From positions 79,697 to 143,696 of the forward strand of contig NW_004797758.1 in the NCBI RefSeq assembly GCF_000002075.1: a DNA stretch of 64,000 bases, in the 5' to 3' direction. Shown here one piece after another: positions 1-9,218 of the stretch. The notes beneath the pieces are model-generated. The model did not search any database, was not told the DNA's origin, and was given only the letters and a program-made list of their open reading frames with translations. How positions within the stretch are numbered: position 1 is the first letter of the stretch; every line of letters starts with the position of its first letter. The DNA is from Aplysia californica (lineage: Eukaryota). The position numbers and the translations under genes are program-made.

Positions 1-987
1 TGAAAAAAATTGGGCTATGAATTTGCACTACTATGAACATGTTTTGTAAGTTTCATGTCTTTTCAGCAATAACTTTCCATTTTATTGATGTCTGAAATCA
101 GTCTTTTTAGCATTTTTGAATTAACATTATGCATCGAGGAGTAATTTTTTTCCAATTTTAAGTCTCTGTATTGGCTTAATCTAAACTCTGATTGTCCTCT
201 TCTTGGTATTTTGCATAGTTTATACTGGCACCTGTTGAAACAAATGATAATACACACTTTATGTACCTGAATATATTTTCTGTGAACTCACAAAATCGCA
301 CTTTTTAACATGATTTTAAAGTTGCCAAAAATTTACGGCGTCCACAAATTTCAAACGCCTGTCATTTTTTTTATTTATTGTCCGATTTCTATAATTCAAA
401 CACCAAAGTTCATGGTTTGTATAGTTCTTTATGATGCAACAAACATAAGTTTGATCAAAGCACTTTGAAATTTGGGTTTGTGGTACCTAGTGTAAATAAG
501 TGATTTTCACCAAAACCCTGAATTACTATACTTGAGCTGATACCCCACGACACGTTGATACAACTTTTAATTTTCAAACACTTCTGTTTCACTGATGTTA
601 AAAATCTGAAAATTTCCAAAACAGAGTCAAGAGCTGAATACCGGGCATTTGATAGACATTACGACCAACACAAATATTACTGTCTTTGTATTTTCATTTG
701 ACATTTTCTTAAAATCCCGAACTTTCATTTTTATGCCTCATTTTGAGAATATATTTCCCATACACTGGGTCACAAAAAAATTTTTATTAAAAGAAGTGAG
801 CCCTTGTAATATCACAGCATAATAATTTACTGTGGACAAATACAAAGAAACACATGTGTACCCATTTTTTTAAAAACATATTGGAAGTTATAGAAGCACA
901 GACAAACTTGGCCCCGACTGTTCTTTGCCTTTTTTACCTGATGGTACAGGAAGAGAGTCAGTAAGTAAGTATGAGACCAGCACTCAC

Positions 988-3900
988 CATCAACAACATG
1001 AGCATCCGCCAGCAGGGCCAGCCGGTCCTCCATGGTGGTGACCACCTTGAGCTGCTTGCCGCGGAACACATAGAAGAGCTCGCCCTCCTCCAGCACGTGG
1101 TGCTCGCAGACCTTGCGCATTGAGCGCTTGAAGGTGTTGTGGCTGTTGGGCGGGTACTGGGCAGTCGCCTTGTACAACCAGATGGCAGAGTAGTAGGTAT
1201 CTAGCTCCATCTGAACAATACAGTAAAACCTTTATAGCACAAGCTTTCCAGGACCATAAAATTTGTTTGCGTTGAGCAGGCTGATCTTAGTTTTTGGAAG
1301 AGTTCTTGGGAACTTGCAAACACAAGTAGGTCATACAAGTGCTGAATATTAGAGGTGTTACTAGACAGCAACATACAAGTAAAAGAAGAAAAGGTGGAGA
1401 GATATGGACGATGGATGTTTGAAATGAAAGAAGGAGCAAACGACACCAGAGCACCCCACCAACCCCTCATGCAGACTTCATGTTAAGGGAAGTTATATTG
1501 TATAGAAAAAAGAGAAAAATAGAAATTGTGGAGTAATTCCTGAGATGACAGAATTGCCAGCGACAAAATAAATCAAAAGAGTCATGCTGAGTTATAATTT
1601 ACAGCAAATCAAAACACAAAAACCACCATAATTCAAAAGCTTATATGAGATCAAGAATTTTGGGGTTTGAACATTAACATAAAACCCAATTAAATTAATC
1701 TGCCTAGCACTCCAAAAGGAAAACTTCATTGCGAAAATGACATGGTTTGTGCACTGATGTACATGAGCACAATGTTCAAATGTGGGCTGAGTTTATGGGT
1801 GATGAGCTTTGTTTGACTGTGAAATGCAATTTTTTCTTCCTAAGTTTTAGGGATGGGATGTTGGCTTCAACCTGAATTATTAAATGCTCACCTTAAAGAG
1901 ATAGGCATCACCAGTGAGAGATAACTACCTGGGTAAGTAGACCAAGAGCCTTGAAAACTTCCCAAACAACCCACAAAAACGAAACAATGTGAACCAAACC
2001 CAAGGTCATTCACACCATAGTCTCCTCCCCCGTGATACAAACAAAAAAGCTCATCAAATGTCGAGCACAATGAGCAAAAGGACAACTTACCTCAACTTCA
2101 ATATCATCCTCGCTAAAAGCATTCTTGTCCAGATCACTGCTTTCTTTAACATTCTCTAAGGTCGCAGTTTTCTCATTCCTTGCTGCTGGCTGACCTACTC
2201 TGGGATTCGAAACTGAAAGCCATGATTTTCGTTTTGGACCACGCACTGCAAAAAATAAAAAAAAATAAAAAATTATAGATAGAACAAATCTCATGATCAA
2301 TGCTATTGTCTCCTTCACGTCAAAAACATTACAGACTTAACACTTACAGAACATTTTTCAGCTGTCTTGAGGTCAAAGAGTTGAAATATCTATTCAAAAT
2401 TATCAAACAATCTTTCCTGGCCTATGTTTAAAATTGACTTGTAAAGCCATATTCCTGGAAACCTAAAAACATCAAGTCTTGGAAGAATACTCTTTATCAT
2501 GTAATGGGATCTATACTTAAATGCATCTTTCAATCAGCTAGCAGTACAATGTTTTACTCACTTGTTTCTGTCTGTCAAATTAAAAGAGACCAGATCAGAT
2601 ACCCAATGAGCACAAAGAGCATCTCATTGCAAGAGACAAAAATGGGTATACAGAGGACACACAGAGTACCTCACCTTCCTTAAGACAAAGATTCTGAGAA
2701 ATCTTAATTTACTTACCAGAGTTACAACCCTCATGTGCCCCATCCTCCGACAGAGCTCCATTGTCCTCACTGCCTCCGCCCGCCGTTCTGTGAGATTTCT
2801 TCGGCTTACGACCTGATCTCCGCTGTGGGACACTCTCGCTAAGATCATTGACACTGGCCAGGGTAATGACCTGCTTGATATCAGGGACACAGCACTGGAG
2901 GTAGTCAGACATAGCCGCTTCCACACACTGCTCTGTCTGTGCAGTGGTCAAGGAGATTTCTCCATTACTTGAGTCTTTTGGAGGGAGGATAGAAGCAGGA
3001 AATGATGGTTCTCTGGAAGACAAAAAATTTGGGTGAATTAGCTTCAGCTTTTTAAGTATTATTTCATGACTGATTTAATTCCACGTTCACAGATTTCAGT
3101 ACTGTAAATAATTAGGAAAAATTTTTAATCACATTGATGCTGCTAAGTGAACACCTTATTTCACAGCATTCTTAATATTTTAACTTTTTATCTCCAGAGG
3201 GGGCTTTCCCACTATGCCAGGGCCCTGTTTTAGTACAAAACTTGAAGTAGACATATACGTCTCTCGACTGGTCATCAAATCAAACAAATGAACCTATTTT
3301 GATAGCTCTTTTTCTGAGGAAAGAACTCCCAATAAAAGAGACCTGTTTTCAGCAATTACTGAAAATTAGTGTAATACTGAGTGCAAATTCCTCAGCTCAC
3401 TATTGGCCCACTTCAAAATTATAAAGTGCATGTGCAACTACAACATCCCTTTCAAGATAACAAACTTTTCAGCAAGAATGCTTACAATATCTCATGCATA
3501 CAGCTTTAAAAAATGGCAAAGCAGTGAAACTTTCAACCTTTTACATGACTGTACATGCACCCTTACACACACACACACACACCTGTTCATCAACAGGTAA
3601 GCCGGGCTAAAGTCTGAAGCAGCTGTGAGCGAGTTGCGGGCTGGGATGAGGCAGAGGTCCAGACAGGTGTGCCAAGAGTCTGTGTACTGCTCTGAGAAAC
3701 TCTGCACTAACTGTAGCAAATGGCTCCAGTGCTCATCTAAATGGAAAGAAAATTTGTATTTATTTTTTCTCATTAATTTCCTAATGCAAATGAAGAAAAG
3801 ACTGTAGTCATTCTTCTTCATTAATCATATCTCTGTGCAAACTGAAAAGCAATTGAGCTTCTCTTCTTCTTCAATTTCCCTATGAAATTCTACAAAGCTC

Positions 3901-6900
3901 ACAAAATCCACTGACATATTATGAATAAATTTACAAAAACTGATAAAGGATTGAGATGCTCTTCTACAATAATATTTCTTTGTTAAATACTCACAAGTCC
4001 ATTGACATCTTTATTAGCTGAGTGGTTGCTATGGCACATTTCATACCAAACCTGCTAAACACAGAGACAGTTGAGGTTGGAGTTTAGCAAAACCCTTTCT
4101 TTATTCAGAATATCTTTCCTCAGCCCAAAAGCCCAGAGTAGGAGACATAGATCTTTCAAATGATTTATTCTCCATCTCAATATAATTTAAGTACAGTATC
4201 ATTTGAGGTACCAACTAACTAGGTGGTATGAAAGTGCCACTGGAATGTTCTGCATTTTTCTTCCCTCTGTTGCTTCTGTCAGTCTGGCATGCTTTCCCAG
4301 CACTAACCTCCCACTTTGTTTTTTATGAAATGTAGACGTTTTAACACTAACATCAATACAACTGAGATCATTTAGAAGGTGGACTTTGACCCTCACTGTC
4401 TGAGCCAATCCAGGCTGAAATGGATATTCGTCTCACCAGAAAGATCAAGATCCTCAATAAAAATTCTCCCTACTACACAAAATCAAACTCAGGTCTTCTG
4501 CATGCGACTGTAAAACGCCCAACCGCAACACCATAGATGCCAGTCCTTCATACTTTAAAGTCATTTATTCTCTCATACGTAGTTTAACTCAGACAAAACC
4601 AAACAGCAAAACAACCTACCTACAGGGTTGTACTTCTCTAGACTAACTGCCACAGCGTAGTGCTGCAAGTTCTGAGCAATGCCACCACTGTCCAGGCTCT
4701 GATCCTGAAGTAAGTCATTGGCCAGCAAAATCACTTCTTCCATCACACCATACCTGTGCCACAGGGAGACAAACACAAAACAGACAATCATATCGATTTG
4801 AATATTTCAGAACGCTCAGTTTTTTTCTCCAACTTAAGAAGTATAGATGGAGTCTGAACACACTCCAGTCAAACACATAATATTCACTTCAAGTATAGTT
4901 TTAAAACAGATCAAGAGCGTTTCTGAGCACATACTTGACACAAATTTCAATAACTTAAAACACTTTTTAGGGCCTGGCTGAAGAGTCATGCTCTAAAAGA
5001 GAATAATCAGGCTAGGTATTTCTATGTACAATTAATGTTATATTGCAATGACTTTCAGTTTACCAACCCACCTTGCGATGAGTCTTAGCAGAAACTGTGA
5101 AACGTATTTCTCGTTGAGCTTCTCAAGAACGTGAACCTCTGGCCACTTTGAGAAACCGTCAAGAGCAGCAGCCACATAAGTTTTTTTCCTCTTTTTATAC
5201 TGTAGTGGGCCTATGATTTGCACCTCAACCTAGAAAAAAAAAACAAGCAAGGAAAGAACTATAAGAAATAGGCTTCAATGCCAATCACCAAAGAGCAGGA
5301 ATGGCAAAATCTCTCAATAGCCACAAAAGTCCCAACAGATCAATTTGGAAAAAATCATAAGTGTCAAAGAAAAATATAAAAGCAATAAGAAAAGAAGAAA
5401 CAAAAGCCTGCACAAAAAGGAAATGTGAAATTCAAACACATTTTATTTACACAGAATACCATAGAAAACACCAGGGTATCCTTATTCAATTTGCTCTATT
5501 TTAAGACACGAGTAAGACATAAATTCTAATTTCTCAATTTTTTTTAAAATTACATTTTTTTTCTACTCTAATATTCTGTACTTCTGTGTACTTTAGAAGA
5601 AACGATTATTTGCTGAGTCTGAAACACACTCAAATCAAAATTATCTTTAAAAAAAAAAAAAAAAAGAAACAATGAAATATCACAGAATTTCCACACAAGC
5701 AATTAGTTTTTTAAACAGATTTGTGGGCTTCAGAAGACTGATTTTTTTCTCTCTCTCTGTGACTTACAGTACAGTGGCAATTTCTATAATTACAGGAGTA
5801 ACTGTTTTAGCTACGATGGGAACACATCTATCCAACACAAGGTACATAAGGCTAGTGTCCACAAACCTTTTGCCAAAACCTCCGAGCTACGTCAAAATCC
5901 ACTCTGGGATCAAACACGGAATCGGTGACAACAGAGCTTGGGTCAAAATCAAGGTCAGAGTCAACTGTTTCTGGTTCGTGTAACTCAGCAGTCACAATAT
6001 ACTGCATCTCCGTCGAAACATCCTCTTGTTTAGCTGTGACTGGTGCCAGCTTATCCTGTAGCTCTTTTTTCTCCCCACCAGTAGCACTTCCACAGCTCGT
6101 TGTGGGGATTTCCGGTTCAACAGCCGGTACAACTTCGCTGAAGTGGCTCTGTTGAAAATTTGACACTGCAGGACGATTTGCCAGGCAAACAACACAGTTC
6201 TTGAGGACTTTCCGCACTGTACTGGCCATGCCCACCCAGTAATACTTGGAGGACAAAGCGTTTAAGGTACGTTCGGTTCCCATATGAACACCTGCATAAT
6301 GAAAGTTCAGAAATGTATTAAATTTAAAAACAAAAGCTTTTGTAAATGAAAGCATTCAAAAATGCATCGCACAAGCTCAGGAAGAAATAGGCTTACATTT
6401 CAAGTAAAATTCATATAATTTCAAAAATTGTCGTACTGAAATACAAGAGGACAGATAGGGCTCTCACAGAGTCAATTTTACTTTCTAACATATATATTAA
6501 TTAATATTGCACTATGATATTAGATCATCATATCTTTTTAAAAAATGGTTAAATAGTAAGGGTTTAATGCCCCTATCAACACTTCTAGTAGGTAAGCAGC
6601 TTAATTTGAGAGGCAGGACCTCCAAATTGAATATTCATCTCCAAAAGGACAGAGCCAAAAATAGGAAATTCATGTAAAATGCCTTTCCCAAGGGCACAAT
6701 GTTGGACTGAGGTGAGGCTCAACATACCATAGAGGTCTATAAAAACTATCAATAATATTTATGACGTGGCGCACCAGCAAGACTCAAGAACAGGGGTAGC
6801 TTTACTAACTGGATTTTTAGAATCATTTCTTTAGCTTTCCAGTGACACTGAATCAGCACCAAACTTTTCCAGCTTTTTTTTCCCGTTTTTCCAACCTTAA

Positions 6901-9218
6901 AATGCTAAATTAATCTTAGACTAACCACGTTCTGATTTCTTTACACATTCATGAAGTGTCTGCTCACAAGAAATGAATCATGTATCAGTTGTCATTGTCA
7001 TCCACATGTCACAAGAAGTTGGTCTCTACCTCTATGTATCTGCATAGTTTTCATATTCTTCCTTAGTTGTATGCAGGCTGCCAGTGAGACCTGGCATAAA
7101 ATCCATAAAAAAACAAGGCCCCACTGCCGCGATATAGATATGTGACTCAAAACCACACACAACCAGTTACATAGATTATTGTATTCATGTCTGCGTATAA
7201 ACATTTCAAATCGTTTTGCAGTCGTTATAAACATAATATAGCAAATTCAATGACAAAAGGTTTCAATATTATGGTGTGGAAATGGAATTGTGTAAATAAT
7301 GTAATGGCTGAATGATGAGTATAAAACGTTTTCAATGTGCTAAAAATCACACAACACTGCAAACTTGGCGTGAAAATCACACACAGGGCGGGGAGTGGAC
7401 GAGAGGAGGTGTACCACGGGGTGGGAAGAAGAATAATTATTGGCTGAATGAGGATTCNNNNNNNNNNNNNNNNNNNNNNNNNNNNNNNNNNNNNNNNNNN
7501 NNNNNNNNNNNNNNNNNNNNNNNNNNNNNNNNNNNNNNNNNNNNNNNNNNNNNNNNNCCCCCCTAAAACTTGAGTGTCGATTAGAATCGACTAAGAGACG
7601 AAAATATCTATTAATGTACTCTCTAAGGGGGTCGTTTTTAACAAGTACTGAGTACTGCCAGTATCAATTAGTAGTCCACCACTACCCCCCCCTGAAATCC
7701 CCCTGAAATCCCCCAGATTTTTTTTAGGTAAAAAAAAGTCATTAAATGCAAATGGTCAAGTATAGTTCGTATGAAAGTATATCCATAAATCTATAAATAT
7801 AAACTTTATATTTAAGTAATAATTTGCGGTGGATATAAAGTCAGAATTTGTGTAAGAACGGATCCGTAGTTTGTGTAAAGCAGACTAAAAATGAAAAGGA
7901 AAAATGTTTTAGTTCTGAACATTCAGACAGGTCCAAGAGTAAAATACCTTCCTATTATTATTTGACATCGGGAGGGGGGAAGGGGGGTCCAAAGCACAGA
8001 AATTTTTAGTACTGCAGTACTATCTAGAGTAATTGTACAGGGTCGGGCAGCACGGTTTTTTTTTTTGCTGTCAGGCACAGGAGTACAAAAAGATCGTTTA
8101 AAACTTTGTTTAAATATCTAGCCCCAAAAGAGTGGCACACAAAGCTAAAGCAACCTCCCTTACTTTCGTTGAAACAACAGTTACGGCGATATTTTGCTAA
8201 AAATAGTCCTTAAGACAGCTTTTTCTTCATCAACTGAGCAAAACAGCATGAAGCTCTTTCCCCGGAAGAGTCAACATTGGTTGTGGATGAAGGCTGTGGC
8301 CTAGAGAGTTATTTGCATATGAGGCCCTATCAAGGATGAAAGAGAATTTGCAGTCGCCGTTTTTGCCCAAATGGGTGGTGCCCGGATTGTAACAAAATCC
8401 GTAGTTTCTCATTCTTCGGGCACATATAAGATAATATAGTGCCAATGGTTGTTTTATAGAGAATCAACTATTTCAAAAACCATGTCATTAGGCCTAATTT
8501 ACGCAGAAATGGAGGACGGTATACCACGGTATTTTGTGTTTACCCATCAATAAAATACTAAAAATTTAAGAAATTGGGCACTCAGTTACAGTAACTATGA
8601 CACCTAGAATCTATTTCTATAGATCTAGATCTAGATATATCTCTAGATCTAGATTTTCTAGATCTAGAATCTAGATTTAGATCTAGATTTTAGATTCTAT
8701 CATGTGTGGTACAGGAGGAAAAGTAAAAGAATAACAATTATTTAAGAGTGAGGGAGAGATCTAATATTTTTTATGACTGTGTCGGTCATGGATTCATGGA
8801 CATGGAAGCTCTAGTCTGCTAGAATTCTCAGTGTTTTTTCTTAAAATTGTACACACCCCATCCCAAAAAGGACCCCAAAATGAAAAGTGACGCCACAGAA
8901 AAATGGCCCTGGCAAAAGAGGCCTACCTTCAGCAGTAACATGCATCTGTGAGACGACAGAAAACTGGGTTTTTGGTGTAATGACAGCTCGACGTAAATTC
9001 GCCTTATCTGAGCCCGGGTTTGGATCCGGTGGTTCTCCTTCCAGTCGCTTGGGACGAACAATGTAGTGTAATTCTCCATCTTCGATTTTGAAGGACTCTG
9101 ATCTCTTCCGCACCGACCGTTTATCTGTCGGTGTCGACCCACTTGGGTAGGTGCCGCACAACAGATATTGCTTGATAACCGCAAGGCTGATATGCGTATT
9201 ACTAGATTTTCGCCGCAT
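988..9218 (-). CDS. Domesticated Gypsy/Ginger-type integrase-like protein (GIN1-like), multi-exon, 3'-incomplete (continues past the left edge)
   Basis: Exons (minus): 9218-8927, 6291-5867, 5229-5072, 4753-4620, 3736-3583, 3012-2717, 2245-2091, 1210-988. All introns are GT-AG and the phases chain (1,0,2,1,2,1,0,1) into at least 612 open codons. Integrase motifs: YLLCGTYP..KRSVRKRSESFKIEDGELHY; HHCC finger (QMHVTAEGVHMGTERT..KYYWVGM..VLKNCVVC); FWQKVEVQIIGPL; DGFSKWPEV; IARYGV; W..CL..ARNS..SDFSPAYLLMNREP. Exon 8 starts a second N-terminal module. Confidence 0.85.
7458..7557. other. Assembly gap (100 N) in intron 1 of the integrase-like gene
   Basis: Run of N bases. Confidence 0.99.

Follow-up and report, generated by a model that had tools for sequence, protein, structure and literature searches.

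The known host genes domesticated from integrases are nearly all vertebrate, and a crustacean case was described only in 2026. That case, Imagin, is a domesticated Ginger1 transposase of malacostracan crustaceans, the origin of which was shown by a tree (PMC12863088). Among the vertebrate genes, GIN1 is said to retain its catalytic residues, and GIN2, which has 8 coding exons and constant neighbours (OGFOD2 and ABCB9), is reported to have a triad that is not conserved (PMC3424704). The mobile relatives of these genes, Ginger1 and Gypsy elements, occur in several copies that bear terminal inverted repeats with CCGG/CCGT duplications, and encode the DDE triad intact along with a GPY/F motif and OTU or Ulp1 protease domains; Ginger1 genes may carry introns, and one such element, Ginger1-1_AC, is present in Aplysia, while Ginger2 is without the YPYY motif that precedes the zinc finger (PMC2836005). 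Integrase domains derived from Ginger2 occur in mammalian “zinc-finger genes”, namely KRBA2 and SCAND3/ZBED9 (PMC3575427).

LOC101859807 of Aplysia californica resembles each of these systems in part. Like Imagin, it is a multi-exon invertebrate host gene; Imagin, however, belongs to another phylum and to a separate event, and has one module as described, with C2H2 fingers never mentioned (PMC12863088), whereas LOC101859807 has a triplicated module and six C2H2 fingers. With GIN1 and GIN2 it shares the status of a domesticated YPYY-H2C2-core gene with introns, conserved HHCC ligands, and unknown function (PMC3424704, PMC2836005), but GIN1 and GIN2 have neither a C2H2 array nor repeated modules, and the GPY/F motif reported for GIN proteins is not seen in LOC101859807. 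The order of YPYY motif, H2C2 finger, and RNase H-like core is that of Ginger1 and of the YPYY-bearing Gypsy integrases (Athila/Tat and Cer1 groups; PMC2836005). Unlike such elements, LOC101859807 is single-copy and has no intact triad, and neither GPY/F nor OTU or Ulp1 domains were seen. KRBA2 and SCAND3/ZBED9 likewise carry an integrase or transposase domain in host genes that belong among the zinc-finger regulators, but are mammal-specific and derived from Ginger2 (PMC3575427). The combination of a triplicated N-terminal module, a dead catalytic fold, and an invariant six-finger array is unreported in the searchable literature, where no paper on the LOC101859807 family was found, in line with the suggestion, made from the letters of the DNA alone, that the gene is possibly undescribed in this lineage. 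The known partner domains of KRBA2 and SCAND3/ZBED9 are KRAB or SCAN and not a six-finger C2H2 array.

The protein (P0094, NCBI “uncharacterized protein LOC101859807 isoform X2”, 1419 aa) was matched residue for residue to 21 coding exons on the minus strand over ~27 kb, with a reading frame open across all 1419 codons. The window, that is, the whole 64,000-nucleotide stretch of Aplysia DNA that was analysed, holds the first eight exons (9218-988, minus strand), which are identical to residues 1-613 of P0094. The remaining 13 (exons 9-21) lie left of the window on contig C488, from about 77741 down to 62251 (loci L005 and L003). Exons 1-8 comprise 1837 nt, or 612 codons plus one base, without a stop, and every intron is GT..AG. 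The sequence-only reading had proposed eight phase-consistent exons with at least 612 stop-free codons, and P0094 agrees with it to the base; 612 codons are correct for exons 1-8, but not for the gene as a whole, of which the window contains 43%.

Exon 1 (9218-8927, minus strand, aa 1-98, ATG at 9218) is identical to P0094, encodes the module A YPYY motif together with H93 (codon 8942-8940), the first histidine of the finger, and is 65% identical to the orthologous locus L007. The phase-1 intron that follows it (8926-6292) splits the codon for G98 and harbors an assembly gap of 100 N (7458-7557), more than 1.1 kb from both splice sites. As the gap lies inside intron 1, and as all orthologues run from exon 1 into exon 2 without added residues, the coding sequence is unaffected. 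Exon 2 (6291-5867, minus strand, aa 98-239) supplies H100, C130, and C133 of finger A, then the acidic spacer, and finally FWQK, the start of the core. The core continues on the minus strand through exon 3 (5229-5072; β1-β3 and α1), exon 4 (4753-4620; β4-β5), and exon 5 (3736-3583; core helices), and ends with REPSFP in exon 6 (3012-2717), which also contains a low-complexity linker and the basic cluster RRSGRKPKK and is 66% identical to locus L006. Exon 7 (2245-2091, minus strand) encodes linker and a basic cluster, RGPKRK. Exon 8 (1210-988, minus strand, aa 539-613) brings the YPYY motif of module B and its first histidine, H609; the phase-1 intron after it splits the codon for G613, equal in position and phase to the intron in module A.

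LOC101859807 is a single-copy, spliced, and transcribed host gene. A 4763-nt contig from run X4 connects exons 2-8 with the introns absent and extends ~2.8 kb past exon 8. X4 is labelled RNA by guess only, but a contig lacking the introns of a gene with one genomic copy would be difficult to account for in another way. Exon 2 is covered by the piece 5864-6293 and exon 6 by 2717-3015, exon joints are found at 5229/5867, 4753/5072, 3736/4620, and 1210/2091, and four joints have CT..AC ends, equivalent to GT..AG on the minus strand. Since the contig splices exons 2 to 8, LOC101859807 is not a chance open reading frame, and the 1210/2091 joint places module B and the core in one transcript. Raw poly-A RNA runs X21-X23 gave almost zero reads over the exons, indicating that expression is low or tissue-limited. 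In the 927 Mb Aplysia genome, the four exons tested (1, 2, 3, and 8) have one significant match each. RNA junctions and copy number had been named beforehand as checks on a host gene, and both agree with one.

The domain order along the 1419 residues is module A, an acidic disordered spacer, the dead integrase core, a basic linker, modules B and C, an acidic region, six C2H2 fingers, and a conserved C-terminal motif (VQYxVECL...LTEAD..AI..LAQAS). Modules A and B each consist of a YPYY motif and an intact H2C2 (HHCC) finger; module C has a YPYY motif and a degenerate finger with at least two zinc ligands missing in Aplysia, so that speaking of “three fingers” overstates the functional count. 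Exon 2 matches Pfam Integrase_H2C2 at 7.6e-13, and 13 orthologues all share the finger A ligands H93, H100, C130, and C133, which bears out the earlier claim that the zinc ligands are kept. Zinc ligands show little or no variation among the orthologues, both in fingers A and B and throughout the six C2H2 fingers. The YPYY pattern, assigned by eye against the published pattern (Bao et al., PMC2836005) and not by a profile, has Y18, P25, F43, and L50 invariant or nearly so and recurs before fingers B and C. The spacer (residues 134-235) contains 20% D/E and 8% K/R and is predicted to be disordered in the AlphaFold model of the Bulinus orthologue; it spans 102 aa, where the sequence-only reading gave ~90 aa. 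The six C2H2 fingers are situated at aa 1018-1182, in exons left of the window, with ligands kept, almost without exception, from Aplysia to Lingula, and match the ZNF568 and CTCF finger arrays in the PDB at 1e-48 to 1e-32. In the window exons and seven orthologues, no GPY/F motif was seen after the core and no SH3, Integrase_p58_C, or similar Pfam match was obtained; the region following REPSFP is of low complexity and poorly conserved.

The integrase core has kept its fold and lost its DDE triad. Its best match to the Pfam rve profile, on exon 3, is sub-threshold (0.0022, 18.7 bits versus a cut-off of 32.6), and a PDB sequence search with the Bulinus orthologue (P0006) returned no match, so the core assignment rests on BLAST matches to the integrases of RT-bearing Gypsy polyproteins (to ~1e-9) and on the predicted fold. 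In the AlphaFold model of P0006, module and core blocks have pLDDT values mostly of ~75-91, and the core shows an RNase H-like order of strands and helices. The best Foldseek matches of this model are the PFV, Ty3, and HIV integrases (best 8.7e-10; TM 0.72 for the PFV core). Of the two HMM scans that had been suggested, the one for Integrase_H2C2 was thus positive and the one for rve gave only a sub-threshold match, while the claim that the core scaffold is kept is upheld by Foldseek and BLAST. In an alignment with intact integrases, the triad columns are occupied by Q243 (codon 5220-5218), A303 (codon 4722-4720), and D337 (codon split over the exon 4/5 junction) in the place of D1, D2, and E, respectively. 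The earlier motif calls were right in substance. The three columns read Q/A/D in Aplysia, Q/E/D in Lymnaea, D/R/N in Octopus, and D/S/K in Lingula; across the family, the D1 column holds Q, L, K, S, M, or D, the D2 column A, E, Q, K, R, S, or another residue, and the E column D, K, A, V, or N, and no family member has D, D, and E all together. An active Ginger1 or Gypsy element was accordingly rejected as an identity for this single-copy gene, and its description as an integrase-derived host gene, multi-exon, transcribed, with HHCC kept and DDE lost, holds.

A two-copy model of core residues 232-400 predicts a dimer with an ipSAE of 0.72 versus 0.24 for the best of three controls, a mark attained by 21/30 proteins solved as one-chain pairs and by 0/23 solved as single chains. 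The score may be model memory of solved integrase core dimers; the predictor passed only 1/7 eukaryotic pairs without an older solved relative. Three runs share at least 88% of contacts, with pLDDT of at least 81. The predicted interface (284-295, 360-367, and 385-395) includes three residues that are invariant (R292, G294, and R388) and one that is almost so (C361), and the exon 5 residues W358, C361, P368, and R370, all invariant or nearly so, are in or beside it.

Colinear proteins of 1026-1560 aa are found in 15 genera of gastropods, bivalves, octopus, and a brachiopod (Lymnaea, Bulinus, Biomphalaria, Physella, Bradybaena, Candidula, Elysia, Littorina, Babylonia, Haliotis, Patella, Pecten, Sinanodonta, Octopus, and Lingula). 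All seven orthologues analysed with Pfam have two to three Integrase_H2C2 stretches and C2H2 fingers, and 3/7 have a weak rve match; a slug-like contig conserves exons 1-6 in unchanged order. In a tree of the family with one Ginger1-like row and RT-bearing Gypsy rows, the family forms one clade (SH-aLRT 100) on its own branch. Within it, Lingula is separated from the 11 mollusc rows (98), heterobranchs and caenogastropods come out as groups, and the supported groupings agree with taxonomy. As the family is one clade with Lingula apart from the mollusc rows, it fits a single domestication prior to the mollusc-brachiopod split. On the other side of the tree, the Ginger1-like P0011, with its Ulp1-like tail, and the RT-bearing Gypsy rows do not separate, and the source element may be either a Ginger1 transposon or a YPYY-bearing (Athila/Tat-like) Gypsy, between which the tree does not decide, in contrast to the case of Imagin. 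P0011, the sole intron-bearing Ginger1-like gene mapped, has its introns at positions different from those of the LOC101859807 family.

The reading that best joins these findings is that of a domesticated gene combining a dead integrase with C2H2 fingers, which probably originated in a YPYY-bearing integrase or transposase and acts as a nuclear, sequence-specific DNA-binding factor paired via its core. An integrase or transposase of the Ginger1 or Athila/Tat-like Gypsy type would have been domesticated once, before molluscs and brachiopods split, and its YPYY-finger exon pair would have been triplicated afterwards. The C2H2 array would read DNA in the nucleus in a sequence-specific manner, and the dead core may pair the protein by retaining the integrase dimer interface, while the H2C2 modules may help the protein to associate with itself or to contact nucleic acids, by analogy with the N-terminal domains of integrases in intasomes; the protein would neither cut nor join DNA. 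A bolder version, to which we would give only a small chance, is an undescribed family of lophotrochozoan proteins, over 500 million years in age, that serve as chromatin or transcription factors: the core dimer and H2C2 modules would hold two DNA segments and the C2H2 fingers would supply the address, such that sites would be bridged or looped architecturally, rather than plainly activated or repressed.

The sequence-only reading had offered as an alternative a host restriction factor, a dead integrase that with its HHCC modules poisons the multimeric complexes of Ginger and Gypsy elements in a dominant-negative way. Mixed dimers with element integrases are conceivable, since the predicted interface is conserved, and Ginger1 elements are reported in Aplysia (PMC2836005). 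Nevertheless, this role is unlikely: the core is just ~24-28% identical to the element integrases in the comparison set, the gene is single-copy without paralogue expansion, the family dates back to the mollusc-brachiopod split or earlier and is colinear with no sign of lineage-specific turnover, and a decoy needs neither the C-terminal motif nor six invariant C2H2 fingers, which indicate a sequence-specific DNA-binding factor instead. Somewhat less probable again is a deep common origin with vertebrate GIN1 or GIN2 through one early-bilaterian domestication, in place of an independent lophotrochozoan event. The 21 exons, three modules, and six fingers contrast with the 8 coding exons of GIN2, for which neither a C2H2 array nor module repeats are mentioned (PMC3424704); searches gave no deuterostome orthologue of the same architecture, the multi-H2C2 urchin protein P0028 is non-colinear and without a core, and the introns are placed differently from those of P0011. 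These points outweigh the shared parts (YPYY, H2C2, core) and introns, the triad that is not conserved in GIN2 either (PMC3424704), and the automatic naming of the Biomphalaria orthologue. The identity of GIN2 orthologue was rejected for this Aplysia gene, given its 21 coding exons and 1419 aa with C2H2 fingers, and the vertebrate frame of GIN1, GIN2, and NYNRIN, in which the gene had been placed, is inapplicable because Aplysia is a mollusc.

It is very unlikely that the protein is an active recombinase or nuclease using other acidic residues near the old site, as 0/3 triad columns are conserved family-wide. Heterobranchs do keep N-D at 304-305 and D-E at 337-338, beside the old sites, and such residues were raised for GIN2 in review (PMC3424704). 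D263 in exon 3 is invariant as well, but its motif is also present in intact integrases, where it accompanies the full triad. The database names are inconsistent (“uncharacterized” in Aplysia, “Gypsy retrotransposon integrase protein 1” in Biomphalaria, “ZBTB49” in Elysia), as might be expected if a transposon copy, decaying or mis-annotated, had been stitched to an adjacent zinc-finger gene during gene prediction. Such an artefact is extremely unlikely for a single-copy gene with 1419 open codons, a single RNA contig over exons 2-8 and beyond, and the same fusion in independent predictions for 15 genera ranging from snails to a brachiopod.

The LOC101859807 family is a probably independent and very old case of integrase domestication, in molluscs and a brachiopod, and a natural test of the uses to which an integrase scaffold can be put after catalysis, whether pairing, DNA synapsis, or chromatin contacts. 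Aplysia being a neurobiology model, expression and knock-down work is feasible. The orthology also corrects the misleading names of the Biomphalaria and Elysia proteins.

LOC101859807, the gene to which the integrase-like exons of the window belong, has a database protein (P0094, 1419 aa, Aplysia californica) that fits 21 minus-strand exons residue for residue, with GT..AG at every intron among the exons mapped. NCBI names this protein 'uncharacterized protein LOC101859807 isoform X2 [Aplysia californica]'. Splice sites were found by joining adjacent exon pairs against P0094, and the full-length protein was analyzed through P0094 itself. The window holds coding exons 1 (9218-8927), 2 (6291-5867), 3 (5229-5072), 4 (4753-4620), 5 (3736-3583), 6 (3012-2717), 7 (2245-2091) and 8 (1210-988), all on the minus strand, and their best protein matches in database searches are molluscan. 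Together these exons come to 1837 nt, or 612 codons and one base, so that the coordinates 988-9218 and the 612-codon count of the sequence-only reading were exact. Its eight-exon gene was right as to the exons and too short in extent, as they make up only 43% of the gene, and 13 further exons lie to the left of the window. Intron 1 (8926-6292) contains an assembly gap of 100 N (7458-7557), with more than 1.1 kb separating the gap from each splice site. The exon 1/exon 2 junction is crossed without extra residues in 13 orthologues, indicating that the gap hides no exon. A second run, of 1566 N, abuts the left edge of the window within intron 8 (contig C488 78131-79696; L005 8432-9997 and L002 1-671).

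The encoded protein includes an integrase that has kept its zinc finger and its fold and has lost its catalytic residues. A Pfam scan places Integrase_H2C2 on exon 2 at 7.6e-13, in agreement with the earlier view that the HHCC finger is retained. For the core, rve on exon 3 is sub-threshold (0.0022, 18.7 bits against a cut-off of 32.6). In BLAST, Gypsy polyproteins match Aplysia residues 237-397 through their integrase cores, with an E-value of about 1e-9 and an identity to the element integrases compared of only about 24-28%. The Lingula protein is less derived and reaches 1e-28 against the same type of core. The Bulinus orthologue P0006 (789 aa) was modelled with AlphaFold from 17 aligned orthologues; in the model the core has the RNase H-like order of strands and helices, and pLDDT is mostly about 75-91 across modules and core. 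A sequence search with P0006 gave no PDB match at E <= 1; in a Foldseek search of the PDB, the top matches of the model were PFV integrase (8.7e-10), Ty3 integrase (1.5e-7) and HIV-1 cores; superposition on the PFV core gave a TM of 0.72 at 3.7 A. Alignment with intact integrases puts Q243, A303 and D337 of Aplysia in the columns of the two catalytic aspartates and the glutamate (D1, D2 and E). The same columns hold Q, E and D in Lymnaea, D, R and N in Octopus, and D, S and K in Lingula. None of the three columns is conserved and no family member has the full triad; the loss of DDE that had been read from the Aplysia sequence thus extends to the orthologues. Elsewhere in the core, residues D263, R292, G294, M296, W358, P368, R370, P381 and R388 are invariant among the orthologues.

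The finger and core are part of a larger arrangement. The N-terminal module A (aa 1-133) combines a YPYY motif with the H2C2 finger (ligands H93, H100, C130 and C133), and is followed by an acidic spacer (aa 134-235, 20% D/E) that is predicted to be disordered in the Bulinus model, the integrase core (aa about 236-395), and a linker with basic clusters after aa 395. Module B (aa 539-649) again has YPYY and an intact finger (H609, H615, C646 and C649). Module C (aa about 680-790) keeps YPYY; in Aplysia a Leu replaces its first His, and molluscs lack its C-x2-C. An acidic region after aa 790, six C2H2 fingers (aa 1018-1182) and a conserved C-terminal motif from aa 1383 complete the protein. In modules A and B, the Gly codon that lies two codons ahead of the second His is interrupted by a phase-1 intron; in module C an intron of that phase lies one codon ahead of the second His. 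This pattern fits an origin of the three modules by triplication of a two-exon unit. A sequence search of the PDB with P0094 returned matches to C2H2 fingers only, and the look-alikes in the ESM Atlas were generic: the front end resembled integrase clusters, and the back end E4F1, ZNF131 and ZNF64.

Database searches recovered colinear orthologous proteins of 1026-1560 aa from gastropods (Lymnaea, Bulinus, Biomphalaria, Physella, Bradybaena, Candidula, Elysia, Littorina, Babylonia, Haliotis and Patella), bivalves (Pecten and Sinanodonta), a cephalopod (Octopus) and a brachiopod (Lingula). All seven orthologues scanned with Pfam have Integrase_H2C2 in two to three stretches and C2H2 fingers, and three of the seven have a weak rve match. 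The names of two orthologues, 'Gypsy retrotransposon integrase protein 1' in Biomphalaria (P0090) and 'zinc finger and BTB domain-containing protein 49' in Elysia (P0095), do not fit this architecture. In an ENA assembly, one slug-like contig preserves the order of exons 1-6, with identities of 46-66%. Two long contigs of that assembly (L006 and L007, ENA ERZ26859052) agree in their orthologous exon 2 protein and are nearly identical in the exons beside it; they probably represent both haplotypes of a sacoglossan-like slug in the sample behind the assembly. Protein identity of L006 and L007 to the Aplysia gene is about 50-65%, a level at which synonymous sites are saturated.

A tree of the finger and core region, built from family members, RT-bearing Gypsy integrases and one Ginger1-like gene, unites the LOC101859807 family in one clade (SH-aLRT 100), separates 11 mollusc rows from Lingula (98), and recovers heterobranchs (100) and caenogastropods (96). 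This pattern fits vertical descent from a single domestication that would predate the split of molluscs and brachiopods. With its Gypsy rows and one Ginger1-like gene, the tree does not separate a Ginger1 from a Gypsy origin. The fish (Labeo rohita) Ginger1-like gene P0011 has no intron position in common with LOC101859807, a comparison that says nothing on origin because Ginger1 families vary in their introns.

Exons 1, 2, 3 and 8 each have one significant match in the 927 Mb Aplysia assembly; the LOC101859807 integrase is not a dispersed element, which bears out its assignment to a host gene. Splicing is apparent when RNA reads are aligned to window positions 900-6400. A 4763-nt contig at depth 56 from run X4, whose RNA label is a guess, covers exons 2-8 without introns and extends about 2.8 kb past exon 8. 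As an intron-free copy of a single-copy gene, it is most simply cDNA. Four of its joints (5229/5867, 4753/5072, 3736/4620 and 1210/2091) have the CT..AC ends of minus-strand GT..AG introns, providing the RNA junctions within exons 2-8 that the predicted gene called for, and the last of them places module B and the integrase core in one transcript. The two other joints adjoin short repeats, which the alignment skipped; the contig coordinates are unbroken across both. Three raw poly-A runs (X21-X23) have hardly any reads over the exons, indicating low expression of LOC101859807 in those runs, which thereby give no information on strand or transcript ends. Very many reads of X21-X23 match a stretch of about 30 nt at 1414-1457, in intron 7, where X4 word depth is also very high, reaching about 1e6 when summed over contigs. 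All of these reads fit partially and are flanked on both sides by unlike sequence; the signal probably comes from an abundant RNA that matches here over a short length, by chance or through a repeat, and not from expression of intron 7.

What such a protein might do is suggested by its parts. Retroviral integrase N-terminal domains mediate self-association or nucleic-acid contacts in intasomes. The product of LOC101859807 is most likely a nuclear, sequence-specific DNA-binding factor, in which the six invariant C2H2 fingers would read DNA, the dead core would pair the protein, and the H2C2 modules would add self-association or nucleic-acid contacts. A two-copy model of aa 232-400 has a symmetric interface formed by 284-295, 360-367 and 385-395; three runs share at least 88% of contacts, with a pLDDT of at least 81. 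Three invariant residues (R292, G294 and R388) and one that is nearly so (C361) are part of the interface, and several more invariant residues adjoin it. The model scores 0.72, whereas the highest of three controls scores 0.24. Among proteins of solved structure, 21 of 30 one-chain pairs and none of 23 single chains attained this mark, although a pass may reflect memory of solved integrase dimers. The model therefore supports a likeness to the integrase dimer and is no proof of pairing. The sequence-only reading had also proposed a dominant-negative restriction factor against Gypsy/Ginger integrases. This role is unsupported: LOC101859807 is a single-copy gene of ancient, colinear descent, and its core is only about 24-28% identical to the element integrases compared; a DNA-binding factor remains the preferred reading.

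Host genes of the same kind are known from other lineages. In vertebrates, Ginger1/GIN transposons gave rise to GIN1 and GIN2 (PMC3424704; PMC2836005), and GIN2, with eight coding exons between OGFOD2 and ABCB9, does not conserve the triad (PMC3424704). Imagin, a Ginger1-derived crustacean gene, has retained YPYY and H2C2 and lost DDE (PMC12863088), and KRBA2 and SCAND3 have Ginger2-type integrase domains (PMC3575427). The LOC101859807 family differs from all of these in lineage and in build, having three modules, a six-finger array and no GPY/F motif that we could find. A literature search yielded no description of this family, consistent with the earlier suggestion that such a gene was undescribed in this lineage.

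Several YPYY and H2C2 modules also occur in further proteins that have C2H2 fingers at the end and are devoid of an integrase core: P0012 (Dreissena), P0020 (Mya, 'ZN653-like'), P0028 (the sea urchin Lytechinus, with four stretches in the search) and P0055, which has a D-Tyr-tRNA deacylase domain and THAP domains in addition to three H2C2 stretches. Host proteins may have recruited the N-terminal module of integrases repeatedly. The fish gene P0011 (L008 10001-14540, a Labeo rohita contig; 11 exons) is named 'Gypsy retrotransposon integrase-like protein 1' in UniRef. Its catalytic Asp motifs are kept, its YPYY-finger part is repeated, and its C-terminal stretch resembles a Ulp1 protease; it looks not like a GIN1 orthologue but like the gene model of a Ginger1-type transposon.
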